Origin: Hyalangium minutum
Lineage (GTDB): Bacteria > Myxococcota > Myxococcia > Myxococcales > Myxococcaceae
Length of the DNA stretch: 64,000 bases
NCBI RefSeq assembly: GCF_000737315.1
Contig: NZ_JMCB01000003.1
Span: forward strand, 496,001 to 560,000
Direction: 5' to 3'
Shown here piece by piece: positions 1 to 21,565 of the stretch. Position 1 is the stretch's first letter, and each line of letters begins with the position of its first letter. The notes below the pieces were generated by a model that did no database searches, was not told where the DNA came from, and saw only the letters and a list, made by a program, of their open reading frames with translations. Made by a program: the position numbers and the translations under genes.

Positions 1-102
1 TACCGAGAAGGAGTGGCCGTGCAACCGTCGGCACTTGTGTCCCTCGGGAGTGAAGGGGAGCCGGTGTGCAGCCTCGAAGGTGAACGCCTTAAAGATCTCC
101 AT
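1..102 (-). CDS. queD: 6-carboxy-5,6,7,8-tetrahydropterin synthase QueD (5' part only; runs off the left edge)
   Basis: Not in the ORF track. Manual translation from ATG at 102 gives [34 protein letters not shown], with the QueD F-x-AAH and C-x2-LHGH motifs. Lies directly downstream of queE. Confidence 0.92.
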
Positions 103-110
103 GCGCCACC

Positions 111-752
111 TTAGGGGATACCGAGGAGTTTGTGGGTCTGCAAGGACAGCCTCCAGCGCGGATGCGCGAGGCAGTACTCGACACAGGACTGGGTGTGTCG
201 CTCACGGTCGGGACCATCGAGCGGCTGCAGGAAGAAGTGGGAGAACTCCAGGGACTCGAAGTTCTCGGGAGGCATGCCCGCCTGGGGATAGACCAGCTTG
301 AGTTCCTGGCCCGCGCGCAGGGCAAGCTGAGTGTTCGCCTTAGGGCTGACGCAGATCCAGTCAATGCCCGGCGGTGGCAGGAGCGTCCCATTGGTCTCGA
401 TCGCTATCTCGAACGACCGGCGGTGGAGTTCCTCGAGGAGGCTCACATCGAGTTGCAGGAGCGGCTCGCCTCCGGTGCAGACCACGAGCCTCTTGCCGTG
501 CCGCCCGCGCCAAGTGGCCTCTACCGCCGCAGCCAGTTCTTCAGCATTCCGGAAACTGCCACCTCCTGCGCCATTGGTGCCGACAAAATCGGTATCGCAC
601 CACCGCGAGCAGCCACCGGCTCCGTGAGGCCGGTCCGCCTCGCGGCCGCTCCAGAGGTTGCAGCCGGCAAACCGCAGGAAAACAGCGGCCCGGCCTGCCT
701 GACCGCCCTCTCCCTGAAGAGTATAGAAGATCTCCTTGACTGCGTACGCCAT
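111..752 (-). CDS. queE: 7-carboxy-7-deazaguanine synthase QueE (radical SAM, long-loop type)
   Basis: [21 protein letters not shown]...[29 protein letters not shown]; sits between queC and queD. Confidence 0.95.
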
Positions 753-755
753 CCC

Positions 756-1457
756 CTACTCCGCCCGGTACCGTGCTGGATCTTTCGCACCGGCTTCGCG
801 GAATCCCTTGAGCCGAAGCTGGCAGGAATCGCAGTGGCCACAGGCCTCGCCCAGGGGCGACGGATCGTAACAACTCAAGGTGATCCCATAGTTCACCCCC
901 AGCGTGAGTCCAGCGCGGATGATCTCGGCCTTGCTCAGCGAAATAAGGGGGGTATGAATCCGGAGCCGCTGGTGCCCTTCTACTCCGGCCTTGGTAGCCA
1001 AGTTCGCCAGTCGCTCATAGGCCTCGATGTACTCCGGGCGGCAGTCCGGGTAGCCCGAGTAATCGAGCGCGTTGACTCCGATGAAGACATCGCTCGCGCC
1101 GAGCACCTCGGCCCAGGCCAGCGCGAAGGACAGGAAGATGGTGTTGCGCGCCGGCACATAGGTGACCGGAATCCCTTGGGATATCTCGGACGCGGGCCGA
1201 TCCTTGGGCACAGCGATGTCCGCCGTCAGGGCTGAGCTCCCGAACATGCTCAGATCGATCTGAGTGATCTCATGCCGGACGGCACCCAGGCTAGCGGCCA
1301 CGCGCTTTGCCGCCTCAAGTTCCACCTCGTGCCGCTGGCCGTAGCGAAAGCTGAGAGCATAGGGCATGAACCCCTCGGACTGGGCCATGGCGAGTGCCGT
1401 GGCTGAGTCGAGACCACCACTGAGGAGCACCACCGCCGTGCGTTCCGTGCCGGACAT
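756..1457 (-). CDS. queC: 7-cyano-7-deazaguanine synthase QueC
   Basis: SGGLDS PP-loop, [23 protein letters not shown]-terminal Zn motif CY...CGHCDSC. Start placed at ATG 1457 (MSGTERT). Confidence 0.97.
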
Positions 1458-2080
1458 GCCATCTCCCAACCGCGCTCGTCGGATCCACACGAACCACGGC
1501 TACCCGCCGTTAGGCGGGCACCCGATAGCACACGCGTTCGCTGTTTCACAGGCGCGGTCGCCATCCTACGTGACGATCCTACTGTGCAGGTAGATAGCAC
1601 CCTGGGCGTTTTAGGCAACTTAACAGGTTGTATCTGGAGTGCTCCGCCGCTCGCTTCCCAGGCTTACGAAGCGCAGTGCCCGTCCTCTGCAACTCCTGTA
1701 AACTGCGCGTCGCGGTCCTTACGGTGCTTCTCCGGGGCTTGGCGAGCCCCGGGGCCGGAACGCGGGACTTGACTCGCGGCGCGAACTCGCGTCTCAGGTA
1801 GTACCCCCACACATCTTAGTATGAGGCGGCCCTCGACGGGCCGAGCATATGCCTCGGCCAGCTTGACACCCCAGGGGATTCCGCGGAGGCGCTCCTGGGA
1901 TGCCGAAGCCGCCTCAAGGTGGGCGGGCCCGCCCTGCCCATTCCAAGCAGAAGTGCTCAACAGGTTGATTGCACCCGCGACGGTGCCTCGATAATGTCGG
2001 GCCTCAATCAGTCATGCTTGCCTGCGGGGGCTGAGACGCGGGCCCACGCCTCTTCAGAAGCCGCCGCGCCGCCGCGCCTG

Positions 2081-3466
2081 ATGAACGTCATCGTCAAGTC
2101 ACGCACTGGTTGGTTGGCGTTGGTCTTACGGTCCAACGCCAGCACGGCAGGGTATCCGTACTACAGCCTCGAATGGCAGAAGCCCGGTTCTCCCGAGCCC
2201 TCCCGGTACTTCATCTGGCAGAACGAACTGCCCTGGCTTTGCCACAGCCTCACTGTGCTTGCGACCCGTTTGGACCTCGCTCGCTTTCGCGAAGAAGGCC
2301 TTCATCCCCTGCTGGCGCAACTCGGCCCCTCGGGTGGACCTGTGTGGTTCGCGCAGATTCAGAACGGTGAAGCGCACCTGACGCTGCGCCGCTACCGGGA
2401 TACCTGGACACCCCAGAACGGCGAGAAGACCCACACGCGCTACTTGGTCTTCGACCGCAGTGGCAGATTCCCACTCCAGATCCGGCTGCCCGCCGCCTTC
2501 GTGCGCTCGGAGGCAATGGGGGACTTCGCGCGGCAATGCATCGCGGCGCTGGGGGGGGAAGTTCAACGCCTTGAGGGTGCCTTTTCTCTGCCAGCCGGGC
2601 AGGACGCGCGCTCTCCCCGGGCCTTCTTCCAACAGGTGGCCGTGCGGCTGCGGGTGAAGGACACCTTCCGCCGCATCCTTGCCTTCCCGGGCATGCCCGT
2701 CGAGCAGGTCGAGGTCTCCATGCTGCAGGAGCCCGCGCTCGTCGCCGCCCTGAGAGCGTGCGAGCAGTCTCGCACGCCCGAGGAGGTCAGTGCCGAAATG
2801 GGACAACTGCTGGACGCACGGGCCCTCTCGGAACTGCTCGCGTGGCCGCAGCGCTACGCGCCCGAAGTCCTGCAAACGGGCTACATCCTGACGCCCGTGG
2901 AGCAGCGCAAGCTCGTGGCGGTGAAGGACCTCAAGGTGTACGCAGCGGACCCGCTGCTCACCGCGCTCCAGCCCACCCTCCCCGCGCTCACCTCCGGCCC
3001 TGAACGCCCTGTCCTGCCCCCGCAATGCACCGAGCAGCAGTTGTTGGCGGCCCGGAAGCGCGCCCTGAGCACCACGTCCCTGTCCACCGCCTTCGGGCAG
3101 GCCGCGCTGCCCAGTCCGGAGTGGGCCCAGACCATTCATCAGTTCCTGCGTCCGCCCCCCGCGCTGCGTATCCACCGTTGGCGGCTCCTCCAACTGATGA
3201 CACTGGCGGCGTGCCAATCCTGCAACCTGCCCGGGGGGCTCGAAGACGCACCGCTCCTGGATCTCCAAAGGCTCGCCCTCTTGACGCACGATGTCACAAA
3301 CCTGTTCGCGGAGGATGGGAGCGAAGACATCCGCGCCCACACCGAGGCGGTGCGTCAGCAGTGGAGAGACCTGCTCCAAGGACGTTCCACCCCCCTGCCC
3401 CTGGCCCAGCTTCCCAAGCGTGGGGAGGAGGCAGCCCCTGCGCGGCAAGGACAAGGACGAAGATGA
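2081..3466 (+). CDS. Hypothetical protein, gene 1 of the six-gene operon (start could be 1994 or 2081)
   Basis: Long open frame; its stop overlaps the next ATG (ATGA at 3463-3466). No family motif recognised. Confidence 0.72.
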   Translation: MNVIVKSRTGWLALVLRSNASTAGYPYYSLEWQKPGSPEPSRYFIWQNELPWLCHSLTVLATRLDLARFREEGLHPLLAQLGPSGGPVWFAQIQNGEAHLTLRRYRDTWTPQNGEKTHTRYLVFDRSGRFPLQIRLPAAFVRSEAMGDFARQCIAALGGEVQRLEGAFSLPAGQDARSPRAFFQQVAVRLRVKDTFRRILAFPGMPVEQVEVSMLQEPALVAALRACEQSRTPEEVSAEMGQLLDARALSELLAWPQRYAPEVLQTGYILTPVEQRKLVAVKDLKVYAADPLLTALQPTLPALTSGPERPVLPPQCTEQQLLAARKRALSTTSLSTAFGQAALPSPEWAQTIHQFLRPPPALRIHRWRLLQLMTLAACQSCNLPGGLEDAPLLDLQRLALLTHDVTNLFAEDGSEDIRAHTEAVRQQWRDLLQGRSTPLPLAQLPKRGEEAAPARQGQGRR

Positions 3467-4494
3467 ACGACTTCGCGATGCAACTCGTCGACGCCTGCAT
3501 GCGGTCCGTGGGCCGCCTCAGGCAACACCTTTCCCACCAACCCACCCAGCCTGATGCCAGCAAGATCCTCCTCACGCGCATGCGTAGGCGCCTGGGCAGC
3601 GACTACCGCCCTGGCCAGAGTCTCCCGCGCAACACCGTGGACGATCTCGTGCAGGAGGTCATTCACGGCGACGAGCACGTGGCCGGTGTGCCCGCCAAGC
3701 CCGCTGAACTGCGCGACACCTTCACCGACAAGCACCAGATCTTCATCCAGCTCGCGGATGGTTGGCGGCTCTCCGAAAGAGGGGAGATGCTGAACAAAGC
3801 GATGTTCTCCGGCTTGGAGATCCTCCAAGCCCCGAGCGACGCCCACGCGCTCCACCGCTTCGCCCACAACCACCTGTTGCTCTACCCGGAGACGTTTCCC
3901 CTGCTGCGCGCCTTTGCGCCCCCGGGCAGCGAGAAGTCCGCCCTGGACCGTTGGGCCGGCCACTTCTTCTTCTCGCGAAAGGTGAACAGCGTCACCATCG
4001 ACTACATCGCTTGGGAACTCGAACACCTGCAAATCGTCCGCAAGGGCCAGGGATTCGAGCTGTTCAGGCCCGCGCCCGCAGTCATCGCGTACAACTTCGT
4101 CGACGCCTACCTCCAGGCTTCGGACATGCGGCTCGATTACGGCGTGCCCATCCAGGATATCGTCACGCAACTCAACATGTACTTCCGCGAGGCGCGCCGG
4201 TACCTGCTCTCACCGGATTGGCAAAGGGATCTGCGGCCCTCGGGAGGCCCTCTCATGAAGCGGGAGATGGGGGACTCCCAACTGCGCCTGGAGCGCGCGG
4301 ACTTCCTGTGGCTCACGGAGCACTCGCTCGTCGAGCCCAGCTTGGTGGGGCGCGTGCTGCGCGAGATGAAGTCCTTCGCGGCCCTGCAGGCGCTGCGCGA
4401 GAAGCTCGAACCCATCCTCATCAAGAACACGCCCATCAACGAACACGATTACCTCTCGGCACTCTCTCCGGACGAGAACGAGCTTTCGCGATGA
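3463..4494 (+). CDS. Hypothetical 343-aa protein, possibly winged-helix (BrxA/DUF4007/DpdG-like position and size)
   Basis: ATGA overlaps at both ends. GWRLSERG resembles a wHTH wing. The domain call is a weak inference. Confidence 0.75.
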   Translation: MNDFAMQLVDACMRSVGRLRQHLSHQPTQPDASKILLTRMRRRLGSDYRPGQSLPRNTVDDLVQEVIHGDEHVAGVPAKPAELRDTFTDKHQIFIQLADGWRLSERGEMLNKAMFSGLEILQAPSDAHALHRFAHNHLLLYPETFPLLRAFAPPGSEKSALDRWAGHFFFSRKVNSVTIDYIAWELEHLQIVRKGQGFELFRPAPAVIAYNFVDAYLQASDMRLDYGVPIQDIVTQLNMYFREARRYLLSPDWQRDLRPSGGPLMKREMGDSQLRLERADFLWLTEHSLVEPSLVGRVLREMKSFAALQALREKLEPILIKNTPINEHDYLSALSPDENELSR

Positions 4495-7364
4495 GCTTCT
4501 TCAACTCTCCCTTCAACTACATGGCCTCGCTGCAGCAGGCGGCGAGCGAGTTCAGCCCCACCGAGACGGAACAGCTGGTCCGCGGCTACCTGGAGGACTT
4601 GAGCCGTGCGGTCTCCGAAGACTCCTTCGATCCCACCGGAGGCGTGAACGCGCTCGTCTTTGGCGAGTGGGGTCACGGCAAGAGCCAGGTCATGTACCGC
4701 ACCGCGGACCACCTGACGCGCCACCACCCGAAGGTGCTCACCGTCCGGATCATCGCGGCCCGGCTCGCTCCCCGCGACATCCTCGAGGCCGCTCTGTTCG
4801 ACCTGAAACGCCAGTCCGGCACGCATGAGGAGGCCGAAGGGCTCCACCGGTCCATGGCGGAACTGGGCGACATGGCGGATGACGATCCCCACGCCCGGAA
4901 GATCGCGGCCAGGGCCCTGGCCAGCATGGCCTCGCACACCCAGCGTCTCCACACCGCCCTGCTCTTCGATGAGGCCGCGCAGACCTCGGGCATCGACTTC
5001 CAGGAGTTCCTGCGCGAGCTCGAGCAGGCTTTCTCGTCTACGCACAGTGTCCTCCACACCATGCAGTGCCACAGCCTGGCCACCCTGGATCGGGCGCGGC
5101 AGGTGGCGAATAACCTGGGGGACTGGGCACGATCCGCCCGGCAGATCCACCTGCCGTCGCTCCAGCTGGCTCAGGCCTATGATTTCTTCCGTACGCGTTT
5201 GGCCGCGCGCACCCATGACTCGCTGCTGGCCGAGCAGCTCATCCCTCCCGGCATCGCCAAGACGCTCTGCGCCGCAGCGGGTGGTAACCCCCGGCGGATG
5301 CTGCAGTACGCATCCCAGATCTGGGAAGCCTGCCATCGCCATGGCGAGCATCGGTTCACCGGGCGCCGCGTGCTCGAGGTCTTCCGCAGTGAAGCCGGTG
5401 TGGCGGCCGGCACCAGCCTGTTCATGGAAGCCCGCTTCCGACGCATCCTCGATCTACTGCCCCAGGAGTGGGGAAGCTTTGGGCAGAAGGTCCGCCTCTT
5501 CTTGGAGCGCCGGATCCCCACTTTGCTCGGTGAGTCGGAACTGATATCCCCCATGCAGCTGGCAGCGGATCTCGGCAACGTTTCCATCGGAGAGTTGCAG
5601 AAGATCACTCGCGAGGTAGGTGGCATCCCGCTCTTCGAGACGAAGACGGACGAGTTTGACGACACCACCTACGGGCTGACACACGCCTTCCGCTCGGATC
5701 TGTGCGGTGCCTTCGGCTCTACGGGCGGGCTTGATCTCAAGCAGATCCAGATCAAACTGCTTCTCAAGCCGCGCGAGGAGCAGAACCTCATCGCCAGCGG
5801 GCTGGCCAACGTGCTGCGGCACAAGGGCTACACCCAAGTCGCGCCGAGGCTCGTCCGTCTGGGGGAGTTCCCATCCGAAGCCCACGCCCATCACCAGACG
5901 CCCATCCGGGGCTTCATCATGCAGGTTCAGATTCCGGACACCACTATTGACGTCCCGGTGCTCGTCACGGGCCTGTGCGGTGTCGCGCCCCCGTCGGCGA
6001 TGATCGAGCGCATTGCCCGGGGGCTGGCTGACCGGGAATGGTTGTTCGCCTACATGCTGTACGCCAACGAGGATCTGTTCTGGGATGACTGGCTCCACGG
6101 GGAGGCGGCCCGGCAGCTTCCAGCAGATCTGCACGAGAAGGCCTCCCGGATCCGGACGCTGAACCCTTCCGAGAAGCTCGTTTCCCCCTCGGCGGTTGAA
6201 CAGGCGCATCCGCCCGGCGTGGCGGCGGCCATTTTCTTCGCCCACCTTATTGGCGCCGGCCAGCAATACTCCGAGGGCAAGCTCCCTCCGGAGGAGATTG
6301 CCCCCATCATCGAAGGTACTGTCGCGGAGATGAACGAGGCACTCCCCCAGCTTCGGGATGTGCGTTACCTCCCCTCCGAGTCTGAGCGGAAGCTCCTGGA
6401 CAACTCCTGCTGGGACAATGCCTCGGCGGAGAACGGGCTCACCCTCAAACAGATCAGCGAGGCCACGCAGGAGAGGCTGACGGGCACCAGCCTCGAGAAC
6501 CTGCTGGGGGGCTACCTGGAGAAGCGCGGGGGCCTCTACTTCCGCAACAAGAGCGCTGGCTTCCCCATCTTCAGCGTAGTCCGCGACGTGCTGAAGGCTC
6601 GGCAGCGGTGCTCTATGGACGCGCTGATCGAGGAGGTCCGCAGCGCGGAGATCTTCGTTGGCGGCGGCGACCGGCTGCGGATCAATGTCGAATGGATCGT
6701 GGAGAAGCTCAAAACCGCAGGGTTGGCCCGGCGTGAGCAATCGGAACTGCTCTTCGTTGACCTCACCAAGGCGCTCAAGGAGAAGGACCAGAAGTACAAG
6801 TCGCAACTGCAGGTATTCACGAAGCGGATCGCCCAAATCGAGCAGTACGAATCGAGCCGCGCCGAGCCCTTGCAACGGAGCCTCGAGGACATCCGGAAGC
6901 GAAAGACGCCGGACGCGAGCCTCTCCGAACGCAGCGAACAACTCGATGAACTCCTGCTGGACCTAGAGCAACTGTCCGGACGCATCGCCGACGAAGAGCA
7001 GGCGATCGTGACCGACAAGCAGACGTACATCAACTACTTCACCGGGGAGCTCGCGGAGCTGAAGCGGCTCAGGGAAGGGCTGGCGCCAGAGTGGCAGAAC
7101 CGGGCATTCACCGAAGAGGAATACCTGGACGCCGACAACCTCTTTGAGACATTCCGGAAGAACCTCGAAACACCGGTGGGCAACAACCAGCGCAATGTCA
7201 TCATGCGCGAGCGGCGCTCCCTGCAGAATCGGATCGACGCACTGAGAGCCCGGGCCCAGGGCAAGGCCGCTGCCGCGCCCGAGGATCCATCCTCGCAGAT
7301 CGTTAACCGCATCCTGTCGAAGCAGCCGTTCGACCGGCTGGTCGTCACCGTGGAGGAAGTCTAG
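4491..7364 (+). CDS. P-loop ATPase (957 aa) with C-terminal coiled coil
   Basis: Walker A GEWGHGKS, Walker B LLFDE, AAGGNPRRMLQ AAA-like helix, heptad-rich C-terminus. Start at ATG 4491 overlapping the previous stop. Confidence 0.87.
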   Translation: MSFFNSPFNYMASLQQAASEFSPTETEQLVRGYLEDLSRAVSEDSFDPTGGVNALVFGEWGHGKSQVMYRTADHLTRHHPKVLTVRIIAARLAPRDILEAALFDLKRQSGTHEEAEGLHRSMAELGDMADDDPHARKIAARALASMASHTQRLHTALLFDEAAQTSGIDFQEFLRELEQAFSSTHSVLHTMQCHSLATLDRARQVANNLGDWARSARQIHLPSLQLAQAYDFFRTRLAARTHDSLLAEQLIPPGIAKTLCAAAGGNPRRMLQYASQIWEACHRHGEHRFTGRRVLEVFRSEAGVAAGTSLFMEARFRRILDLLPQEWGSFGQKVRLFLERRIPTLLGESELISPMQLAADLGNVSIGELQKITREVGGIPLFETKTDEFDDTTYGLTHAFRSDLCGAFGSTGGLDLKQIQIKLLLKPREEQNLIASGLANVLRHKGYTQVAPRLVRLGEFPSEAHAHHQTPIRGFIMQVQIPDTTIDVPVLVTGLCGVAPPSAMIERIARGLADREWLFAYMLYANEDLFWDDWLHGEAARQLPADLHEKASRIRTLNPSEKLVSPSAVEQAHPPGVAAAIFFAHLIGAGQQYSEGKLPPEEIAPIIEGTVAEMNEALPQLRDVRYLPSESERKLLDNSCWDNASAENGLTLKQISEATQERLTGTSLENLLGGYLEKRGGLYFRNKSAGFPIFSVVRDVLKARQRCSMDALIEEVRSAEIFVGGGDRLRINVEWIVEKLKTAGLARREQSELLFVDLTKALKEKDQKYKSQLQVFTKRIAQIEQYESSRAEPLQRSLEDIRKRKTPDASLSERSEQLDELLLDLEQLSGRIADEEQAIVTDKQTYINYFTGELAELKRLREGLAPEWQNRAFTEEEYLDADNLFETFRKNLETPVGNNQRNVIMRERRSLQNRIDALRARAQGKAAAAPEDPSSQIVNRILSKQPFDRLVVTVEEV

Positions 7365-10300: not shown

Positions 10301-10607
10301 CGTCATGCCCGTGGCAGGCACCGCGCCCACTCCGCCGCCCAACCCGGCGACTATGGCCGCGCCGCCCTTTGTGCCCCAGGGCATCGCGGCCGCGCCACCG
10401 CCCGAGACTGGCTCTCAGGCGTCGCAATCGCCGATTGCGCCTGTCCCCGAGCTTCCCCAAGCGCCTCCAGAAACCCGGCCTGCGGCTCCGCGTGAGCGGC
10501 GAACCCTCACCTTCATGCCCACCCCCGAAGACCTGCGCGTGCTCGCGGAGTTCCTGGACACCCAACCTCACATCGTCCACTTCAACTTCGAGCCTCCCCA
10601 AAGCTGA
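7365..10607 (+). CDS. 1080-aa protein: probable degenerate P-loop domain, coiled coil, Pro/Ala-rich linker and short C-terminal module
   Basis: ATG directly follows the previous TAG. EAPPRGGLS (Walker-A-like, no Lys) and VAVLMLD. Long helical region; Pro-rich stretch at about 10075-10495. Confidence 0.78.
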   Translation: MRSIGREKELERVLAQIARRVDAQGNRITSPAATSMGSQVHISVEAPPRGGLSLFLEDAKETLAQRPGLYPVLVTVQDSSRPQDALRLALEEIARAAGVPHPSDTTNLSLFQLCEQLWESQKRVAVLMLDVTQALEQLHGNESLRQKASSNALLQRLRILVNDMEDKQPTLAAIVGWRNDFRERSIEWKAQDVEMRYYPHITLWPDFKQEDAWPLFESILRAQGYTNIDGHYPGFCRTGLTVGDILEELKQTGAHRVDGPLLLSTLNRKKPLEQDVATVPSDLLVALCLQDARIGPSHPLHEKISSPAVKPFVNPERTEQDEVVYVANEDLYRAAHVLPNRFLISTVRDYQRRFEDRDPEFALELLAGLPPALTGVAAPEVPQKLGGYAKIAFNLPSDLVPPGLKEMRVTAYCTLASEISNDLKTDLIAQLNATESTPLSRATQCVLVLHSEAGQDSQLHAAVLSSPRPDWRILQLKKGRLTKDEAAALCTIDIKAEQATELAFKKVDPSRQSKDLSTYLQRQIRTRFNSLLGKYPALDSQAFDGQHLPRLMVESHTFVDLATSGDDVSETAIKVLENLQVVERKTRKELCWAFEKDMLLKNLLDRASHAAGNLSEEMSRLYTFDPRNWPSIAAALATAYSDFLEPQGSTLREKPPQNSLTQRVRIAFTRLDPLLQELRDLSAQGKAVTLEHEREELDSQLTSAQNISSIELICEETLALVEKGKRAVEETQERRDQLVTQLQSDYNELERRAPDPSLSNMRSELSKKAKQILARQPPLLAELEEIQRSFETYRAKARAVQEKLQTNLQDAALLRQHIQARRTTLENLEKQAAALDGEAHHRIQEALRSIHQQLDELHSQLGDEKKHPSIPPDAREKELITIRTALDTLASQLQERSRWMVAPRKAPAPRPATSPQPAPPSSAAPQPSAGGGMSTQPSALPPQASPAPRDDTHRPETSAPPVVAAPASGLPKQLPSSPPVMPVAGTAPTPPPNPATMAAPPFVPQGIAAAPPPETGSQASQSPIAPVPELPQAPPETRPAAPRERRTLTFMPTPEDLRVLAEFLDTQPHIVHFNFEPPQS

Positions 10608-13600
10608 TGCGTCCCCTCAACGAATACACCGCCATTCGTGAGCGGGCAGGACGGATGCTCGAGGTTCTCATCGAGAAACAGCATTACGACGGGCTGTGCG
10701 CCGATCTGCTGTACGTGCTCGACGAGGAGTGCCGCCAGCGGCTCAACGCGGGAGCGAGCGAAGTCTTCGGCTCCGTCAAGAGCCTCTGGGAGCCCTTTCT
10801 GGACGCGATCCGCACCATTGCGCCGGAGATCGGCCTCACCGCCGGAGTGAGTAATGCCCGCCTCCTTCAGGAAGAACTCTTCCAGATGATCCTGCGCCGG
10901 ATGGTGAAGGAAGGAGACCTCATCTTCGCCAGCGACCGCCAGCGGGCGCGCAGCCGGGCGCTGGAAGTGGCTCACTACCTGCGTAACCTCCGCCAGCGAA
11001 CTGCCCTCAAGGAGCAGAGCGGCTTCCGCCCTCGGCTCGTCGAGATGATGAAGGTCGAGGTCCGCAAGCGGGAACGTCCTGTCCGCGCCCGCACACTCGA
11101 CGAGTTGCTGGATGCCCTGTCTGAGCTGGAGTACGAGCAGACCGCCGACCATCTCGAGGCGCTCCCGCCACTCCAGAAGTTGGAGGAGCTCAAGGAGGCA
11201 TTCGGGGCGTTCCTGCAGCGCGCCCTCCCCTCCCCTCAGTTCGCGGACTTCCAGATGCGCGCTTTCGAGCAACTCGTCACGGAGGCCTTCCTTAAGCAGA
11301 ACGCGGAGCCCAAGGCCGCCGTGATCGCCGCGGGCACGGGCTTTGGAAAGACCGAGGCCTTCCTCCTGCCCATCCTCTTCTACAGCGCCTATGCCCGGCT
11401 GCTGAAGCAGCACAACGTGCGGGAGGAGGGCGACCAGGACACCTCGGGCATCGACGCCCTGCTGCTCTATCCCCGCGTCGATCTCTGCGACAACCAAGCC
11501 GAGCGGCTCCTGGGGTACCTGTACCACCTCAACGCCGTTCTCCTCGAGAAGTTCGGCAAGGAGGCGTTGGGCGGGCCCCTGCGCCTAGCCCTCGCGCACG
11601 GCCGCATCAACGATACCTTCCGCATCCGCTGCCCGGCCTGTCTCAAGGAGGAAAAGGTCGCCGGCGTGGCCTGGACGGAGAATGACAAGAACAAGGCCTT
11701 CATCCGGCCGAAGTTCCGGGACACGGACAGGGTCGAAAGCTTCTTCTGCGATCGCAAGCTGGAGCACCAGCACGTCGCGGACATGCTCGTCTTTCAGGTG
11801 TACCGCGAATCGCGCGACGCGGATCTGTTGATCACCACCGTGGACACGCTGCACCGTCGGCTGATGGACCATCACGGCGAGGCTTCGATCTTCAAATCAC
11901 GCAAGCTGCCGCCGCGCTTCGTGGTCCTCGACGAGATGCACATCTACGAGGGACAGCACGGCGCGCACGTGGCGAACATCCTCCGCCGCTGCCGCCAGCG
12001 CATCTCCCATATGCGCCACGCCATCACAGTGCCGCCTCTCTTCATCGGGGCTTCGGCCACGGCCGGAAGCCCCGAGCAGCTAGCCGCGCGCATGTTTGGC
12101 GTGCCCTTGGACAAGATCCAGCTCATCCAACCGGGCAGCGACGAGAAGAAGACGCAGGGGCTGGAGTACTTCTTTTTCCTGCGCTCGCCGGGGAACCGAC
12201 TCGTCGAGGAGCGGCTTCCTCCCGCAGTCCTCGCGGACGAAGCCCCGGACGATGATACGCAGGACGACTTCCCCGTCCCTTCCCAGCCCCCATCCCCGAG
12301 CCACTTCGTCTCCGAGCGGGCGACGATGCTCCAGGCCGCCTTTGCGCTCCAGCACACGATGAAAGCACCGGGCCGGGTAGGGGCCAAGAGGAGGACGCTC
12401 GGCTTCGTCGACTCAGTGGACAGCGCCCAGCGTCTCGGCAGCCAACTCGATGACGCCGAGTGGCAGGACTTCGGTCAGGGAGCGATCGCGCGCAAGGGCG
12501 CACCGCCGGCGGGCCACCAGAAACCCCCGCTCTACGCCTACCGGCTGCCCGTGGGACGCCCCGGCGCGGGCTTGGCGGATCTGACCAACGCAATCCAGGC
12601 CTCGGGGGCGGAGATTTCCCGGGGCCTGGCGGCACCCTCCTCGTTCGCATTGCCACAACTCGGGGTGGGTTGCATCCGCCAGTCCTTGCGCGACTGCCAT
12701 CAACCTCCCCACCACCTCCTCGAGCGCTGCCAGCGCTACGAGCAGGGCGAGTGCTGGTTCGCCATGGCCCACTCTGGCGAGGAGGGGCTGCGTCCCATCC
12801 CCATCCAGACACACCGCTCGGGCCGCCGGGGCTGGGGAGACGCTCAGCGGCGGTGGGAGGACATCGACAAGGATCAATGGCGGCTACTCATCACCACCTC
12901 GGCGCTCGAGGTTGGCTTCGATCACCCCGAGATCATCGCGACGTGGCAGCATCATGCTCCTCCGAGCGTGGCCTCCTTCGTGCAGCGAAAGGGGCGCGGC
13001 GGACGTGGGCTGCGCGACTACCCCATCACGATGATGGTGTTGGGACCGAACGCGGATGACACCTACACCTTCCAGAACCACTTGAAGTTCGTGGACTCGG
13101 CCGACTTCAGCAACTACGTCGACGAGGAGAACCCGAGCGTGCGGATGCAGCACGTCTTCTCGGCGGTCCTGGACTGGTGCGCTTCCCAGCAAGGCTACCA
13201 ACAGGTCTACACCACGTATGAATTCGAACCGCTGTTGAAAGCCCTCCGTCAAACAGAGGTGCGCGACTGGGTCAGCGGCTGCCTCGACATGCGGAGCAAG
13301 GCGATCCACGACATCCTTACCGCGCTCCATGCGTACGTGGCGGAAGTCTGGCATGCGCCGCTCGATCCCTCCGGCAAGGAGTTCCTGGGCGGAGATTCGG
13401 TGCGGCCCAGCGATCTGTTCAAACCCACCGCCGCCCGGAAGATCGGCGTCTGGAAGGACCGGCTCCGGTCCCGCACGGACGTCGAACGCACGCGACAGTG
13501 GTTGGATGCGGCCGAACGCTTCTTCGAGGGTGGCGATAAGCGCATGCGCAACGTGGTGGACTTCTGCCAGTACGTCCCCGACGCCCTGCTCAAGAACCCG

Positions 13601-15430
13601 GATATGCACATTCCGGCCACGACGCTCTCGACGCCAGTGGGACGGTATGTAGACATGCTGGAGCGGCCCCAGGGGCGGCCGCTGCGCTGGGTTGCCCAGG
13701 AGCCCACAGAGTTCGCGCTGCGGGCATTCCTCCCCGGCGGCTTCAAGGCCCGCTACGACGGGCAACTGTGGATGGCTCCCTGGCAGCCCTCCGCCAACCT
13801 CGTGACTACGGGCAATGTCACCTGGGCGGCCACGCGCGCCCAGATCCACGAACTCTACAAGCCGGGCAATCCCATCACTCTGATCGATCTCCTCAAGGAG
13901 GCGAACCTCGAAGAGGGCACCCAGCGCCAGATTCTCTCGGCTGCGGGAGAGGACAGCGTGGTCGTGTTCCCCGCGGGCCTGGAGATCCGGCCGCTCGGCA
14001 GGCAGATGTCCCGCTCGTTCCAACTCGACGAGACAACGAAGACGATCGTCCCCACCAAGCCCCAGGGCGCCACCGGCACGTACACCCTGCTATCCCGGGA
14101 TCCGAACGTCACCCCACGCACGGTCGTCATTCCCCGGCGGAGCCAGAATCGGCGGCTCGTGGTCTCGTCTGGAACCGGGCTGCTGACGTCCATCTCCTTT
14201 CATGAGTCGTTCCGGCTCGTCGTGGCGTACTACGCCAACCTGGTCCACTGCTACCCGAAGGACGATGAGGTCCGGACAATCGTTGTGCGCTTTCAGGACG
14301 AGACGGTTTCGAAGCCGCTAGTGGCGGCCATGGAGGTACGCAGCCAGTGCGTGGAGTTCGTCATGCGCTGCCGCGAGGAACGCCTGCGCGGCTGGAGCGC
14401 GGCCCAGCGCGCCCGAGCCTTCTGGAGACGCGTCTCCTCCGAAGCGCTCGAGGTGCTCGTCGTCCGGCGGGGACTCCTGCCGAACATGTACCTGTTGCCA
14501 GGAATGATCGATCTGTTGCGTTGGGCGGAGGCCAAGCGCCGGGGCCGGGTGGGTGCCTTCTCCGAGCGCCCACCAACGGACGCGGAACTGCGCGAGGCCT
14601 TCACCCAGCCTCTTCCCGGACAGCAGGAGATGGCACGGCTTATCGTGCAAACCTCGGCGCCCCTGGCCCAGGTGCTCCAGGAGGCCGCGACGTGGACGGA
14701 CGCCCATGGCGCCCGCTTCACGCTCGCAGACAGTCTCGCGGTGGCCCTGGCACGCGCGCTGGGCAGCCATATCAACGTCTCGCCCAGGGCCCTGCGTAGG
14801 TTCGTCGACGTCCGAGGCGCGGACATCCACGTGATGCTGTACGACGACATCGACGGTGGGAGCGGCAACGCCCGGCGCATCGCCGAGGAGTTCAGCCGGT
14901 GGAGCCCGGAGCGTCTCTGGCAGGGAGTGGAGCGCGCCTTGGACTGCCCAGCTGCGGGGATGGACGCGGCAGTAGCCACGGCACTCTCCTCGAGGCTGTC
15001 TCCAGACATCCTCTCCACGATGGCCCACCGCAACCAACTCCCCGAAGAGTGGACGGCCCATCTCGCCAGCCCGGCCCGCGCCCGTCACCGGTTGCGGCAC
15101 CTGCTCGAAACCCCAGCTCTCGCGGCCTTCTACCTCTACGCCCATGAGGAATGGCGCCTGCTCCAGGAGCAACTCTCCGCTCCTCCTCCCCACTGCGCCT
15201 TCGTGGAGAGAATCCACTGCGCCCCCGCGCTCGATCCCCGCGCCGAGGCGCTGCGGCAGCAGTTCCTCCGGAGACAGGACGGGTTGGCCGAGCTCCCCGC
15301 CCGCCTGCAGGAGATGGAACCTTTGTGCGTGGCCGGCTGCCCGGAGTGCCTGACAGGGGCTCTGTTCGAGGAGGAGCGCTTCATCGATCGCACGTTTCTC
15401 CAGAAGCTGCTCACGGAGCGCACGGAATGA
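10607..15430 (+). CDS. Large SF2 DEAD/DEAH-box helicase (1607 aa) with DUF1998/MrfA-like C-terminus (DpdJ/DruE-like class)
   Basis: AGTGFGKTEAF (motif I), LLLYPR (Ia), ITTVDTLH (Ib), VVLDEMH (II), GASATAG (III), TTSALEVGFD (V), QRKGRGGR (VI), LYDDIDGGSG and C-terminal CVAGCPECL. Confidence 0.92.
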   Translation: MRPLNEYTAIRERAGRMLEVLIEKQHYDGLCADLLYVLDEECRQRLNAGASEVFGSVKSLWEPFLDAIRTIAPEIGLTAGVSNARLLQEELFQMILRRMVKEGDLIFASDRQRARSRALEVAHYLRNLRQRTALKEQSGFRPRLVEMMKVEVRKRERPVRARTLDELLDALSELEYEQTADHLEALPPLQKLEELKEAFGAFLQRALPSPQFADFQMRAFEQLVTEAFLKQNAEPKAAVIAAGTGFGKTEAFLLPILFYSAYARLLKQHNVREEGDQDTSGIDALLLYPRVDLCDNQAERLLGYLYHLNAVLLEKFGKEALGGPLRLALAHGRINDTFRIRCPACLKEEKVAGVAWTENDKNKAFIRPKFRDTDRVESFFCDRKLEHQHVADMLVFQVYRESRDADLLITTVDTLHRRLMDHHGEASIFKSRKLPPRFVVLDEMHIYEGQHGAHVANILRRCRQRISHMRHAITVPPLFIGASATAGSPEQLAARMFGVPLDKIQLIQPGSDEKKTQGLEYFFFLRSPGNRLVEERLPPAVLADEAPDDDTQDDFPVPSQPPSPSHFVSERATMLQAAFALQHTMKAPGRVGAKRRTLGFVDSVDSAQRLGSQLDDAEWQDFGQGAIARKGAPPAGHQKPPLYAYRLPVGRPGAGLADLTNAIQASGAEISRGLAAPSSFALPQLGVGCIRQSLRDCHQPPHHLLERCQRYEQGECWFAMAHSGEEGLRPIPIQTHRSGRRGWGDAQRRWEDIDKDQWRLLITTSALEVGFDHPEIIATWQHHAPPSVASFVQRKGRGGRGLRDYPITMMVLGPNADDTYTFQNHLKFVDSADFSNYVDEENPSVRMQHVFSAVLDWCASQQGYQQVYTTYEFEPLLKALRQTEVRDWVSGCLDMRSKAIHDILTALHAYVAEVWHAPLDPSGKEFLGGDSVRPSDLFKPTAARKIGVWKDRLRSRTDVERTRQWLDAAERFFEGGDKRMRNVVDFCQYVPDALLKNPDMHIPATTLSTPVGRYVDMLERPQGRPLRWVAQEPTEFALRAFLPGGFKARYDGQLWMAPWQPSANLVTTGNVTWAATRAQIHELYKPGNPITLIDLLKEANLEEGTQRQILSAAGEDSVVVFPAGLEIRPLGRQMSRSFQLDETTKTIVPTKPQGATGTYTLLSRDPNVTPRTVVIPRRSQNRRLVVSSGTGLLTSISFHESFRLVVAYYANLVHCYPKDDEVRTIVVRFQDETVSKPLVAAMEVRSQCVEFVMRCREERLRGWSAAQRARAFWRRVSSEALEVLVVRRGLLPNMYLLPGMIDLLRWAEAKRRGRVGAFSERPPTDAELREAFTQPLPGQQEMARLIVQTSAPLAQVLQEAATWTDAHGARFTLADSLAVALARALGSHINVSPRALRRFVDVRGADIHVMLYDDIDGGSGNARRIAEEFSRWSPERLWQGVERALDCPAAGMDAAVATALSSRLSPDILSTMAHRNQLPEEWTAHLASPARARHRLRHLLETPALAAFYLYAHEEWRLLQEQLSAPPPHCAFVERIHCAPALDPRAEALRQQFLRRQDGLAELPARLQEMEPLCVAGCPECLTGALFEEERFIDRTFLQKLLTERTE

Positions 15431-18400
15431 CTGGAACACTGCGCCGCTCGCTCGAGGAGTTGCACCGTTCGAGCCGGCAGGATCTGCCCTCCCTGTGCAA
15501 TGTGCTCGTCCAGATCAACGATACCCCCGTGTGGGTGTCCCAGCAGGGTGGGCGCTGGCAGCTCCGGGTGAGGAGCCTCTCCAACACGGTCAATGCGTTC
15601 ATCGCCGTGCATAAGGCTCCCGGGGAAACCGGGCTGGACTTGAAGTACACGAAGACGTCGGCCTCCCTGCTCGCGATGTTCGACGAGGTACCACTGCGGC
15701 GGCTCTTGTCCCCGGGAGAGATCGCGCTCGTCCAGGCCGAGCCCCGGCACAGCAGTGACGGCGAACTCTTCCTCAACGTTCAGGCTATCCTCTTGCTGAG
15801 GCCGTTCCAGACCTTCGGCCGCATCCAGGTGGACTACGAGTCGCGCTGCGCCCGCAAGAGCTATCTCTCGGTCACCAAGGGTGTTGGCACCAAACCCCCG
15901 GACACGCTCCACATGGGCAGCGTCGGAGGCATGGTGGCTCACGAGGTCTTCTCCCGTCTGGCCCAGCAGGAGAACCGGCGGGCAGATACCCCAGAGGAGA
16001 TTTTTGCCCACGCACTGGGCAGTGAGACCGTGGGCTCGCTCGTCTTCCTCGGGCTGAAATCGCCCGAGGACATGAAGGCCGCGCTGCGCCCGGGCCTGGA
16101 CGTCCAAGAGGTCATCACCCGCTCGGAAGCGCTGCGCCGGTTTCTGGCGTCCGATCAATGGGCTCCCGAGAGCGATGTGCTGAACAATGGCATCGTCGTG
16201 GCCCCGGATCTCCTCGGGCGCAAGCATGTCGCGGAGCTGAAGTACATCAGGCCCGGCTCGGATTACGACGACGCCGACAAGCAGCGCGGGCAGATCGAAG
16301 CCTACCTCGCTTGGGCGATGGTCGAGTACGGGCTTCCTGAGGTCTGCTCGGAATGGAAGGGGCTGCTCGTGCAGCTCCACCCGCAGGTGGACGAGGCGCA
16401 GCGGGTGCGGACGCTGCAAGCACAACCCGAGCTCATCGGGGGACGCCTGCTCAAACGGCACCGCCTGCTCGCACTCACCAACGGCGCGTGGCTGCCTGCT
16501 CCCAACCCGGACGAGTGCAACCAGTGCGAGTTCAGCGACAAGGCACTGCGCGGAGAGGAGCAACAAGCCGCGCCCGCGTGCACTTTCCACTGCCAGATGG
16601 AACGCGGCTGGGAGTGCTACACGCCTCCTCCGGGCCGTGCGTGCCCGCTGATCGACAAGTGCGATCAGTACAACCGCTTCGTCGCGTTCGAGCGCTTGGA
16701 TCAGTTCAACCGGCTCCGGGCCGATCTGCTCGACGAGGAGGAAGAACGGGCGGCCATCTCCCAGATCATTGAGGCGCTGACAGGCCGGGAGGGGGGCGAG
16801 GCCACGGGGCTCGTGCTTGGAGGGTTGAAGGTACTGGAGCACAAGCCAAGCACCTTGAAGGTGGAACTCCCGCCGCGCCTGCAGGTGCTCGACTTCGCGC
16901 ACCGGGACGAAGTCTTCGAGTTGTTGTGCGAGGGTCGGGCGGCCGGGCTCGTCCGCATGCACAAGCGCAGGGGCCGGGACCAGATGACGCTCTCCGAAAT
17001 CCACTCTTCGATGCGTCCGCTCGCCACTGGCACGCTCGTCGCCTTGAGGGCGGTGCCCGAGTGGCGGGTGAGCCCCCGTGATCAATTGAGGTACCTGGAC
17101 CTTGTGCAGCGCCATGACGAGCCTCCGATGAGCCTGCGGTCCGGAGCCCGCCGCGATCGGCTCCCGGCGTGCACGGAGTTGGCGTCCATCGAGCAGCTCT
17201 CCCCCGAGGCCCAACTGGTGCTGATCGACGCTCCCGGTCGCTCGGCGCTGCGCACTGCGGCGCAGAAGGTGCTCGATTGGATGCGCTCCAGCGGCACCGG
17301 ACGCATCCTGGTGGTGGATGCCATTGAAGGGCTCCAGCCCGCCCAGGAGTTCGCGGATCTGTCGGACCTGTCGTTGTCCGAGGCATTCCATGCCGACACT
17401 CTGCCGGTGGCGGAGCGCCTGCGCGCGCTCGTGGATGGCATCCAAGGCAAGCGCGTCTGGTGCGTTCCCCGCGAGCAACTCACCGGTATCCGGCTGAGCA
17501 CATTGGTGGAGTCCTTGGGGCGTTTCTCTGACGTCATCATCATCGGCGCAGAGACGTTCCCGCTGCTGGCCATCCACCGCTGCCTGGCGCTGGGCAAGCG
17601 CGTCACGCTGGTAGGTCAGGCCTCCGCCAGCGGCCCACGCGCGGAGAGCCTCCAGGCCCGGCAGTCGGAACTCTACCAGAACACGCTGCGGCTGCTTCTC
17701 GAGGCGGGACCCTCCATCTTCCCAGCCCAGGTGGAGCAGGTGGAGATCGTGCGCCTGCCGGCCGTGCACGGCTGCGCCGGAAGTGACCGCATCTTTAAGT
17801 TCAAGGGGATCCAGCGGGTGAGCCGACTGGAGCCCCATCCCTGCGCGGCTCCCGAGGAAGGACCGGAAGCGAGTACCCAGGCTCGGGTGCAAGGGGAGAT
17901 CGAGCTCACGCGGTTCGTGCCGCTCAGTCTTCATCAGGTGCAGAAACGCCACGTCATCGTGGAGGTGCTTCCTTCCGAACGGAACTCCGTGCGCCACCTC
18001 AAGGAACTGCTCAAGGGCATCACGGCGCGAAGCATCGAGCGGATGAACATCATGGCGAAGGGGCATCTGGACACGGCGCTCCTGGGAGAACGTGTCCGTA
18101 TCGTGGACATCCAACAGTCCACGGTTTCGGCGTCGCCGGGCACCGAGCACCGCGTGACGCTGCGCGTGCCCCATGACCGGTTCCCTTTCATCCAGGAGCG
18201 GCTGTTCACCAGCCGCACCGAAGTGGAGGAACTGCTCGCCTTCGCGAAGCAACGCCCCCAAGAGCAGTTTCACGTGACTTCGCCCTTCTTCGCGCAGTGC
18301 CTGCTGATAAGCCAGCTGGCGATGGAGAAGGAGATCCCTAACGTGATCGTGGTTCCCTTGGAGCACCTGGGGTGGAAGCGGCCTGGGGGGGACCGGAACC

Positions 18401-18576
18401 TGCTGGTCAGCACCGTCGTCACCCGGTCGAATCCGGGCTACCCCTATCCCATGAATGACCTGGGCCGACTCATCGAGTTGTTCACCGGGGACTATGCGGA
18501 GGTGCACCTCTTCTCCTCGAAGGAGGCCTTGACGCACCACCCCGTTCTCCTCCGCCTGACCAGCCCGCGGCTCTAA
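15427..18576 (+). CDS. Dna2/Cas4-like PD-(D/E)xK nuclease with Cys cluster, fused to a degenerate SF1-helicase-like region (1049 aa)
   Basis: YESRCARKSYL, GGMVAHEVF, APDLLG...AELKY, CNQCEF plus further Cys residues. Later IDAPGRS, VIIIGAET, VTLVGQ and VTSPFFAQ fall where SF1 motifs would but lack the catalytic residues. ATGA overlap at 15427. Confidence 0.78.
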   Translation: MTGTLRRSLEELHRSSRQDLPSLCNVLVQINDTPVWVSQQGGRWQLRVRSLSNTVNAFIAVHKAPGETGLDLKYTKTSASLLAMFDEVPLRRLLSPGEIALVQAEPRHSSDGELFLNVQAILLLRPFQTFGRIQVDYESRCARKSYLSVTKGVGTKPPDTLHMGSVGGMVAHEVFSRLAQQENRRADTPEEIFAHALGSETVGSLVFLGLKSPEDMKAALRPGLDVQEVITRSEALRRFLASDQWAPESDVLNNGIVVAPDLLGRKHVAELKYIRPGSDYDDADKQRGQIEAYLAWAMVEYGLPEVCSEWKGLLVQLHPQVDEAQRVRTLQAQPELIGGRLLKRHRLLALTNGAWLPAPNPDECNQCEFSDKALRGEEQQAAPACTFHCQMERGWECYTPPPGRACPLIDKCDQYNRFVAFERLDQFNRLRADLLDEEEERAAISQIIEALTGREGGEATGLVLGGLKVLEHKPSTLKVELPPRLQVLDFAHRDEVFELLCEGRAAGLVRMHKRRGRDQMTLSEIHSSMRPLATGTLVALRAVPEWRVSPRDQLRYLDLVQRHDEPPMSLRSGARRDRLPACTELASIEQLSPEAQLVLIDAPGRSALRTAAQKVLDWMRSSGTGRILVVDAIEGLQPAQEFADLSDLSLSEAFHADTLPVAERLRALVDGIQGKRVWCVPREQLTGIRLSTLVESLGRFSDVIIIGAETFPLLAIHRCLALGKRVTLVGQASASGPRAESLQARQSELYQNTLRLLLEAGPSIFPAQVEQVEIVRLPAVHGCAGSDRIFKFKGIQRVSRLEPHPCAAPEEGPEASTQARVQGEIELTRFVPLSLHQVQKRHVIVEVLPSERNSVRHLKELLKGITARSIERMNIMAKGHLDTALLGERVRIVDIQQSTVSASPGTEHRVTLRVPHDRFPFIQERLFTSRTEVEELLAFAKQRPQEQFHVTSPFFAQCLLISQLAMEKEIPNVIVVPLEHLGWKRPGGDRNLLVSTVVTRSNPGYPYPMNDLGRLIELFTGDYAEVHLFSSKEALTHHPVLLRLTSPRL

Positions 18577-21002: not shown

Positions 21003-21079
<77 letters not shown>

Positions 21080-21178: not shown

Positions 21179-21565
21179 CTACTTCCCGTCCGCCTCGTCG
21201 GCGAAGTCCTGATCGTCCGACTCGAACTCGTCGTTGTCGTCCGCCTCCTCTTCGCGCGCGTCGATCTCCGCGTGGTTCTCCGGCGGGGCCTCGCCATTGA
21301 GCGCACTCTTGAGCACCTGGCTCGGCCGGAAGGTCAGCACCCGACGGGCCGAGATCTCGATCTCCTTGCCCGTCTGCGGGTTCCGCCCCACGCGCGCCTT
21401 CTTCTGCCGCACCTGGAAGTTCCCGAAGCCGGAGATCTTGATCTTGTCCCCGCGCTCCAGCGTCTCCTTCAAGGTGTCGAAGACGAGCTCGACGATCTCG
21501 GCCGACTCCTTCTTGGAGAAGCCCACCTTCTCGTAGACGCCTTCGATGATGTCCGCCTTCGTCAT
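21179..21565 (-). CDS. ihfA: Integration host factor alpha subunit with acidic C-terminal tail
   Basis: MTKADI..., KISGFGNF, GRNPQTGKEIEI, RRVLTFRPSQ; follows pheT. Confidence 0.93.
   Translation of the reverse strand: MTKADIIEGVYEKVGFSKKESAEIVELVFDTLKETLERGDKIKISGFGNFQVRQKKARVGRNPQTGKEIEISARRVLTFRPSQVLKSALNGEAPPENHAEIDAREEEADDNDEFESDDQDFADEADGK

Follow-up and report, generated by a model that had tools for sequence, protein, structure and literature searches.

A Dpd-type DNA modification module facing a rare six-gene operon in Hyalangium minutum, a candidate variant of 7-deazaguanine-dependent restriction

The Dpd system of Salmonella enterica serovar Montevideo (dpdA-K; Thiaville 2016, Yuan 2018, Gedara 2023 PMC10164549) is the nearest described counterpart of the locus analysed here. 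This locus lies at the left end of a window (the whole stretch of DNA that was analysed) of 64,000 nucleotides from the myxobacterium Hyalangium minutum (source contig JMCB01000003.1 of GCA_000737315.1, 1.23 Mb), and it joins genes for the synthesis of preQ0 (7-cyano-7-deazaguanine) and for DNA modification, some of them left of the window, to a divergent six-gene operon, g1-g6. Among the Salmonella enzymes, which have been reconstituted, DpdA and DpdB put preQ0 into DNA while hydrolysing ATP, and DpdC turns it into dADG (2'-deoxy-7-amido-7-deazaguanosine) (PMC10164549). The two loci are alike in DpdA, DpdB and, at family level, a DpdC-like gene, in preQ0 genes embedded in the island, in a DpdJ-related YprA helicase carried in a separate multi-gene operon, and in what appears to be a horizontally mobile island context. 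They differ in that DpdD, E, F, G, H, I and K are missing here. The nuclease of Salmonella Dpd is of the phospholipase D (PLD) type, whereas the predicted nuclease of the present locus is a Dna2-like PD-(D/E)xK enzyme with an apparently dead superfamily 1B (SF1B) domain; the ATPase here, an ORC/Cdc6-like protein (ORC, origin recognition complex) that includes a coiled coil, does not match DpdH/BrxC in sequence, and two extra proteins of unknown fold are encoded. Canonical DpdJ has lost the DUF1998 zinc cluster, whereas the helicase g5 has C-terminal cysteines there (as read in this one sequence). Judged by sequence, the locus carries the modification side of Dpd and departs from its restriction side, with DpdD-I and DpdK absent and the DpdJ match under the cutoff.

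A second relative, BRIGADE, was described from halophilic archaea, where a deazaguanine cluster stands with a Dpd-branch YprA helicase and frequently also a large Dna2-like nuclease/helicase; it usually has two YprA helicases (one of them ARMADA-like, with a BrxA-like insert), DpdG, DpdHI/BrxC, and a small PLD nuclease (bioRxiv 10.1101/2025.09.15.676423). The locus of H. minutum shares the deazaguanine cluster, the Dpd-branch YprA helicase and the Dna2-like nuclease, and a comparable pair occurs on the Haloarcula plasmid pHsi139, a locus not confirmed as published BRIGADE. BRIGADE has been reported from Haloarchaea only, whereas the hosts of g1-g6 are bacterial (Myxococcota, Planctomycetota), and g1-g6 differs further in its single YprA helicase, in having no PLD nuclease and no match to DpdG, DpdHI or BrxC, and in the extra genes g1-g4. 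DISARM, Druantia, and ARMADA are alike in that a large DUF1998-type superfamily 2 (SF2) helicase forms the core of a multi-gene, nuclease-bearing defence operon, but their modification, where they have one, is made by methyltransferases, and their nucleases are of the PLD type or fused; the scores of g5 on the DruE and DrmA models are far below its DpdJ score. Eukaryotic Dna2 (5EAN) resembles the model of g6, in which a PD-(D/E)xK nuclease and Cys cluster are predicted to be followed by SF1B RecA domains. Unlike Dna2, to which it is about 12% identical, g6 has no Walker A lysine and a degenerate Walker B, stands in a prokaryotic defence context, and is probably not an ATPase.

No description of the g1-g6 operon was found in the literature, in which ‘many uncharacterized ... 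Dpd-like classes’ are acknowledged (Bell et al., bioRxiv 10.1101/2025.09.15.676423) and a ‘reduced restriction operon content’ is reported for Myxococcota dpd islands (PMC12235509). We hold it moderately probable that the locus is a Dpd-type restriction-modification island in which the canonical restriction genes have been replaced by the rare g1-g6 module. All results are computational; gene identities, motifs, predicted folds, and neighbourhoods (viewed with 10 kb flanks) were observed directly, and real genes were distinguished by codon-position G+C in a region whose G+C content of about 65% is slightly under that of its flanks.

The preQ0 and DNA modification genes

QueD, QueE, and QueC make preQ0 from dihydroneopterin triphosphate. 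The preliminary description of this DNA had placed the three genes on the minus strand, transcribed in the order queC-queE-queD, and family matches and coordinates agree with that arrangement. To the left of queD and on the same strand, the source contig (the stretch labelled L001) continues with a DpdC-like gene, then dpdA, and then dpdB. The features of this arm are as follows.

1-102, minus strand: queD (6-carboxytetrahydropterin synthase), N-terminal 34 codons in the window, the rest left of position 1
111-752, minus strand: queE (7-carboxy-7-deazaguanine synthase, radical SAM, Cx14CxxC type), TIGR04508 at 331.5 bits (cutoff 240)
756-1490, minus strand: queC (7-cyano-7-deazaguanine/preQ0 synthase), TIGR00364 at 198.7 bits (cutoff 150.3), PF06508 at E 3e-73
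1491-2080, no strand: divergent intergenic region of 590 bp between queC and g1, that is, between the two arms
L001 11200-11991, same strand as queD: DpdC-like gene, 263 amino acids (aa), DUF6884-family by its relatives
L001 11988-13274, about 1.2 kb left of position 1, same strand as queD: dpdA, 428 aa, NF041059 at 574.4 bits (cutoff 200)
L001 13313-14470, same strand as queD: dpdB, 385 aa, NF041060 at 467.6 bits (cutoff 300), PF14072 at E 5e-25

The full queD (L001 10651-11022) matches TIGR03367 with 111 bits (cutoff 89) and PF01242 with E 8e-39, and for queC an alternative start at 1457 is possible (NCBI gene call). The DpdC-like gene overlaps dpdA directly, a single copy of dpdB stands downstream, and a large Ser/Thr-kinase/GAF/histidine-kinase gene comes next after it. 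The intergenic region presumably holds promoters for both arms; no sigma-70-type promoter or terminator consensus was found in 1491-2080.

The preliminary description had predicted dpdA, dpdB, dpdC, and folE left of position 1 and had set a reading of that sequence for TGT-like (tRNA-guanine transglycosylase-like), DndB-like and FolE genes as one of its tests. The reading returned DpdA and DpdB, both above the curated equivalog cutoffs. The expectation of dpdC held in part, as a DpdC-like gene is there with its class assigned via the family and not through a match of its own. The expectation of folE failed, for none was found in the island or in the 10 kb to its left, and the supply of dihydroneopterin triphosphate must come from a folE elsewhere in the genome. 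The 263-aa protein is called DpdC-like because its family matches DUF6884 and DUF328, the domains reported for DpdC (PMC12235509 for DUF6884; PMC12839542 for DUF328): among 33 family members scanned, PF21818 (DUF6884) was matched by 21 and PF03883 (YaaA/DUF328) by 3, and in about 70 of 80 DpdA loci from other genomes the gene in the equivalent position aligns with the protein over its full length. Searches of Protein Data Bank (PDB) chains with its single sequence and with the family profile gave nothing useful. Residues 172-242 weakly resemble (E 5.7e-4) the KH-domain part of an archaeal cleavage and polyadenylation specificity factor (CPSF, 2YCB), and the C-terminal third of the protein may be a nucleic-acid-binding domain.

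We then compared the neighbourhoods of DpdA across genomes by scanning one genome per species, which gave 80 loci whose gene order was mapped by tblastn. The block queC-queE-queD-dpdC-(dpdB2)-dpdA-dpdB is kept in about 70 of these 80 loci, from Actinomycetes, Acidobacteria, Planctomycetes, Myxococcota, and others, and the recurrence of the same block across so many phyla shows the que genes to be part of the dpd module. That they are a housekeeping preQ0 pathway for tRNA queuosine, with a merely coincidental position, is a reading to which we give almost no credence. QueC, QueE, and QueD are used in tRNA queuosine synthesis as well, and the island has no folE; but the que genes are contiguous and co-directional with the DpdC-like gene, dpdA, and dpdB in a block kept in dozens of dpd loci, no tgt, queA, queF, or queG adjoins them, and no preQ1 riboswitch or other Rfam family was detected near them. 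Because the DpdC-like gene, dpdA, and dpdB continue behind queD, it is supported that the que genes serve DNA modification and not tRNA, as had been proposed from the window alone. Orthology with the Salmonella enzymes suggests that the DNA of this genome would actually carry the modification.

Genes and predicted proteins of the g1-g6 operon

Facing the que genes, six plus-strand genes (2081-18576) with overlapping or abutting stop and start codons and coding-type G+C at third codon positions form the translationally coupled operon that the preliminary description had recognised.

2081-3466, plus strand: g1, 461 aa, no recognisable domain, first gene in all operon copies
3463-4494, plus strand: g2, 343 aa, no recognisable domain, its ATG overlapping the g1 stop, with an orthologue in all operon copies
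4491-7364, plus strand: g3, 957 aa, predicted ORC/Cdc6-like AAA+ ATPase with a C-terminal coiled coil (motifs, AlphaFold2 model, Foldseek)
7365-10607, plus strand: g4, 1080 aa, long coiled coil after a P-loop-like N-terminal domain whose Walker A is degenerate (weak profile matches, alignment)
10607-15430, plus strand: g5, 1607 aa, YprA/DpdJ-like SF2 helicase (PADLOC, NCBIfam, Pfam matches)
15427-18576, plus strand: g6, 1049 aa, predicted Dna2-like PD-(D/E)xK nuclease with a degenerate SF1B helicase fold (alignment, AlphaFold2, Foldseek)

The link to Dpd is clearest in g5. Its best match among all defence profile hidden Markov models (HMMs) is the PADLOC DpdJ model PDLC02896 (E 6.6e-68), and it matches the NCBIfam DpdJ model NF041067 with 201.6 bits against a cutoff of 800, with the helicase core alone aligning. 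A genuine DpdJ from Micromonospora scores 1189 bits on that model and is about 26% identical to g5 over the helicase core; by sequence, g5 is a relative of DpdJ, not an orthologue. DEAD (E 5e-13) and Helicase_C (E 5e-5) matches are above their cutoffs and the MZB match is weak (19.5 bits, cutoff 24.2). The motifs GFGKT (Walker A) and DEMH are present; RecA1 has an insert rich in cysteines, and at the C-terminus there is a putative DUF1998-like cluster (‘DCPAA’, ‘CVAGCPEC’) read in this sequence.

The predicted effector nuclease is g6, which has no family match of its own. D261, K272, Q289, and Y293, of the PD-(D/E)xK and QxxxY motifs, are invariant in nine homologues, as are cysteines 364, 367, 385, 389, 397, 406, and 412, and the N-terminal C141 is nearly so; PF12705 is recorded on three g6 homologues. 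The AlphaFold2 models of g6 and g3 were built on shallow alignments of 9 and 12 sequences, respectively. That of g6 (predicted local distance difference test score, pLDDT, 70.8) has Dna2 (5EAN) as its best Foldseek match over the full length (E 1.7e-20), followed by Upf1 and IGHMBP2. At the Walker A and B positions every homologue has a degenerate sequence (‘IDAPGxS..R’ and ‘xAE’), and the SF1B domain is accordingly predicted from these motifs to be ATPase-dead.

In g3, the Walker A motif (G61-H-G-K64-S65, GHGKS) and the Walker B residues D160-E161 are intact and invariant. The AAA+ domain, with weak AAA_22 and AAA_16 matches, is followed by alpha/beta and winged-helix-like domains and then by the long C-terminal coiled coil. 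The model (pLDDT 83) finds Cdc6 1FNN as its best Foldseek match (2e-7), then ORC, RuvB, and TnsC, with the matches covering the N-terminal ~400 residues. An identity of g3 with DpdH/BrxC was rejected, as none of the 12 g3 family members matched such an HMM (PADLOC). In g4, a weak AAA_22 match spans residues 41-172 with no GK[ST], and matches to SMC-like (structural maintenance of chromosomes) coiled coils lie at 658-895; a paralogous relation of g3 and g4 was not supported (hhalign probability 4.5%). The tail of g4 (window 10050-10500, residues ~900-1040) holds about 140 low-complexity residues rich in Pro, Ala, and Gln, after which a conserved peptide of about 40 residues forms the C-terminus; together they look like a flexible tether. 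Orthologues of g1 are 452-479 aa long and head every operon copy, and the start at 2081 agrees with full-length alignment of orthologues, including distant ones, with conservation from residue 1. Searches of Pfam, NCBIfam, PADLOC, and PDB sequences with g1 were all empty and g2 had no family or PDB match; even divergent orthologues of the two gave no Pfam match, and their profile-versus-PDB searches were empty. PDB-chain searches with the single sequences of g3, g4, and g6 and with the profiles of g1, g2, and g3 returned coiled-coil noise and nothing useful.

The preliminary description had likened the setting to Dpd islands, with their DpdH ATPase and DpdJ helicase. The likeness stands for g5, which resembles DpdJ, and not for the operon as a whole, which is not dpdD-K and has no DpdH match: g1-g4 and g6 matched none of the NCBIfam or PADLOC models for DpdD, E, F, G, H, I, and K, and neither the window nor the other operon-bearing loci gave a tblastn match to genuine DpdD, E, I, or K. 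As no canonical DpdD, E, I, or K stands beside the operon, the modification module would otherwise be without a restriction partner.

Distribution of the operon and its association with dpd modules

Among 5.8 billion protein clusters searched, g6 has 9 relatives and g3 has 13, and an exhaustive search of 1.84 billion proteins found 88 representatives of the g6 family, many of them fragments. The genes g1-g6 are together in every operon copy seen; the operon travels as one piece and is very rare. It adjoins dpd modification genes in at least four lineages and in three arrangements, as listed here.

This genome: dpd module divergent from g1
L009, L098, L099 (myxobacterial read sets, metagenomes): dpdC-like, dpdB2, dpdA, and dpdB co-directional downstream of g6, no que genes
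Corallococcus exercitus (L014 with L007): operon, by its g6 and g5 end, convergent with dpdB; an IS701 copy (IS, insertion sequence) in between
Pirellulaceae metagenome-assembled genome (MAG; L037): convergent on dpdB, as in C. exercitus; g5 42% and g6 39% identical to the window copies

The g6 proteins of L009, L098, and L099 are 78-79% identical to the window copy, and the myxobacterial operons are 78-93% identical to one another. The DpdAs of this genome, of the L009 group and C. exercitus, and of the Pirellulaceae MAG are 54-60% identical. Diverged DpdAs beside similar operons are indicative that the pairing of operon and dpd module has arisen or been reshuffled more than once. The operon also occupies the position that canonical restriction genes take in relatives: in Myxococcus sp. 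Y35, whose DpdA is 89% identical to that of this genome, DpdE (917 bits) is divergent from queC in the same slot, and in Micromonospora and in a Bryobacteraceae MAG, DpdD-DpdK-DpdJ(-DpdI) converge on dpdB.

Counterparts of the last two genes occur in archaea. A tblastn search of plasmids with g6 gave two matches, both from Haloarchaea. On pHsi139 of Haloarcula sinaiiensis, a g5-like helicase (30-35% identical, E 1e-46, across the record origin) is followed by a g6-like nuclease, and the pair adjoins queE, queD, a DpdA::DpdC-like fusion, a second TGT, a BREX-type ATPase, and an EVE protein. The fusion, annotated as a 969-aa ‘hypothetical protein’ (L101 8533-11442), matches DpdA over the leading portion and the DpdC-like protein close to the C-terminal end, and so appears to be DpdA::DpdC. 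The EVE-domain protein next to it (L101 11576-12049) is a possible reader of modified bases, and the second TGT is its neighbour as well. A Halobaculum plasmid carries a g5-like and g6-like pair as well, with no DpdA within 16 kb.

Several observations weigh against a Dpd-type island with g1-g6 as its restriction side, and some of them bear on the main alternative, that g1-g6 is a self-contained anti-phage system blind to 7-deazaguanine which often shares islands with a dpdCAB module, the latter acting alone (as an orphan epigenetic or anti-restriction mark) or with another partner. The strongest comes from M. xanthus. In CP017169 and in the read sets related to it, neither dpd nor que genes lie within 10 kb on either side of the operon, which is flanked upstream by CBASS (cyclic-oligonucleotide-based antiphage signalling system) genes and an insertion sequence and downstream by an integrase fragment and the housekeeping genes secG-tpiA-pgk-gap. 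Several M. xanthus-related samples without nearby dpd genes keep g4 intact, and no DpdA homologue from M. xanthus was among the best 120 of 4851 matches. The operon is also alone in the visible flank of L094, of a contig of sample 3300056388, and of the Halobaculum plasmid, and several other operon contigs with one visible flank have no dpd genes in it. Within the H. minutum locus, the DpdC-like protein itself is below every Pfam threshold and has no NCBIfam match. Two DpdB paralogues, both above the DpdB cutoff, flank dpdA in most related clusters (L009, L010, L014, L027, L037, and L098 were compared), and the second one is not present here. Five of the six operon proteins, g5 being the exception, have no sequence similarity to any Dpd protein, and none can be assigned as a reader of the modification. 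In addition, YprA helicases operate without deazaguanine in relatives such as Druantia and ARMADA (bioRxiv 10.1101/2025.09.15.676423), and dpd islands without restriction genes have been reported in Myxococcota (PMC12235509).

Even so, we consider a self-contained system unlikely. Both elements are rare, and chance adjacency in at least four lineages and three orientations, with diverged DpdAs, is very improbable; the operon sits in the exact slot of the canonical dpd restriction genes of close relatives, and the association recurs in Haloarchaea. The preliminary description had called the operon the restriction arm, and comparative genomics (the dpd adjacency, the shared slot, and the Haloarcula pair) speaks for that role, with coupling of the operon to the dpd module being likely rather than proven. 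The domain content suggests that g1-g6 may restrict unmodified DNA.

The same distribution bears on a further alternative, that the operon serves DNA repair or replication restart, in the manner of MrfAB repair or of the processing of ends by Dna2, rather than immunity. YprA/MrfA helicases and Dna2 have repair roles, and g3 is ORC/Cdc6-like. The extremely sporadic occurrence, the insertion sequences or integrase fragments flanking the operon, its neighbourhood of CBASS and dpd modules, and the best matches of g5, which are the defence helicases DpdJ, DruE, and DrmA and not MrfA, make this reading highly improbable.

Other arrangements were seen while the loci were compared. The CBASS of M. xanthus CP017169.1 (CHAT-SAVED, DncV-like cyclase, E2/ThiF, and JAB; L002 445-5785) lies just upstream of the operon, in which g4 is split into 680 and 342 aa (L002 12878-16119), while the related read sets have it intact at 1080 aa. 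L035, from the Bryobacteraceae MAG, was rejected as an operon copy, as its 39% match to g5 is a canonical DpdJ beside DpdK and DpdD. Between dpdB and dpdD of this canonical cluster, three genes are inserted (L035 2855-5680), which encode an Fpg/MutM-type DNA glycosylase (298 bits), an HNH-like protein, and a third, divergent DGQHR protein. In C. aberystwythensis (L015 11701-19229), a DpdA 97.6% identical to that of C. exercitus has different partner genes in the same slot, one for a RecB-like nuclease of 756 aa and one for a fusion protein (more than 1772 aa) in which an IGHMBP2/Upf1-type SF1B helicase is joined to a DpdJ-like helicase. These partners are another uncharacterised Dpd-like restriction arm, with the types of parts found in g5 and g6.

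Surroundings, proposed mechanism and implications

To the right of the operon, the following features lead to the edge of the accessory region.

18601-19500, minus strand: IS701-family transposase remnant directly after g6, NF033540 at 150.5 bits over the C-terminal part of the profile
19666-20823, plus strand: Ser/Thr kinase / NTPase gene fragment without the N-terminal kinase lobe, weak matches to the C-terminal part of kinase models
21003-21079, minus strand: tRNA-Pro(GGG), found by ARAGORN and Rfam, right edge of the accessory region

The open reading frame of the IS701 remnant runs on into the antisense strand of g6. The 385-aa reading frame at 19666-20823, which has high third-position G+C and combines a C-terminal kinase part with an NTPase-like region, is probably a gene fragment left between the insertion sequence remnant and tRNA-Pro. 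An accessory region next to tRNA-Pro had been proposed from the window, and the tRNA gene is indeed there; classical tRNA-att integration is unsupported, as no repeat of the tRNA region of at least 13 nt was found at the left boundary. Right of tRNA-Pro on the minus strand, an IHF-alpha-like gene (integration host factor; 21179-21565) and a pheT-like gene (21655-24066), both assigned from their translations by eye, start a housekeeping stretch and mark the end of the accessory region. Other insertion sequences near operon copies are the IS701 of Corallococcus exercitus between dpdB and g6 (L014 11537-12697) and DDE_5 transposase genes upstream of g1 in M. xanthus (L002 6006-6861). The setting resembles a defence island: there are IS701 remnants and a fragment of an integrase, and in M. 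xanthus CBASS adjoins the operon. Mobilisation by insertion sequences could explain the shuffling of modules.

In the mechanism that we propose for the Dpd-type island, preQ0 made by the que genes would be exchanged for genomic guanine by the TGT-like DpdA with the ParB/DndB-like ATPase DpdB, and the DUF6884-family DpdC-like protein would probably hydrate the resulting 2'-deoxy-preQ0 (dPreQ0) to dADG. On unmarked DNA, g3 would probably assemble with its degenerate coiled-coil partner g4 and with g1 and g2; g5 would unwind or translocate on that DNA; and g6 would thread the single strand so produced through its SF1B domain, itself inactive, and degrade it. In this scheme g6 would take the role of the PLD nuclease DpdK, and g3/g4 that of the BrxC-like DpdH/I. 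It is about an even chance that g1-g6 is an undescribed bacterial class of 7-deazaguanine-dependent restriction machinery, which would share its conserved core of Dpd-branch YprA helicase and Dna2-like nuclease with haloarchaeal BRIGADE-type loci and could be plugged onto varied DpdA/B/C modules by shuffling mediated by insertion sequences.

The nuclease and the mark reader of Dpd restriction are undefined to date (PMC10164549, PMC5699537). The locus is a natural module swap, in which the same modification genes stand with a different and much simpler-to-interpret effector set, predicted from sequence to comprise a single active helicase, a single unambiguous PD-(D/E)xK nuclease, and a single active AAA+ protein, and a comparison of the two arms gives a handle on the essential functions of deazaguanine-dependent restriction. 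Until now, deazaguanine genes paired with a Dna2-like nuclease have been reported in Haloarchaea only; with this locus the combination extends to bacteria. Myxococcota dpd islands called ‘reduced’ or ‘restriction-less’ (PMC12235509) may have non-canonical partners. If true, a deazaguanine-dependent g1-g6 class would explain the apparent lack of a restriction operon in the dpd islands of Myxococcota.

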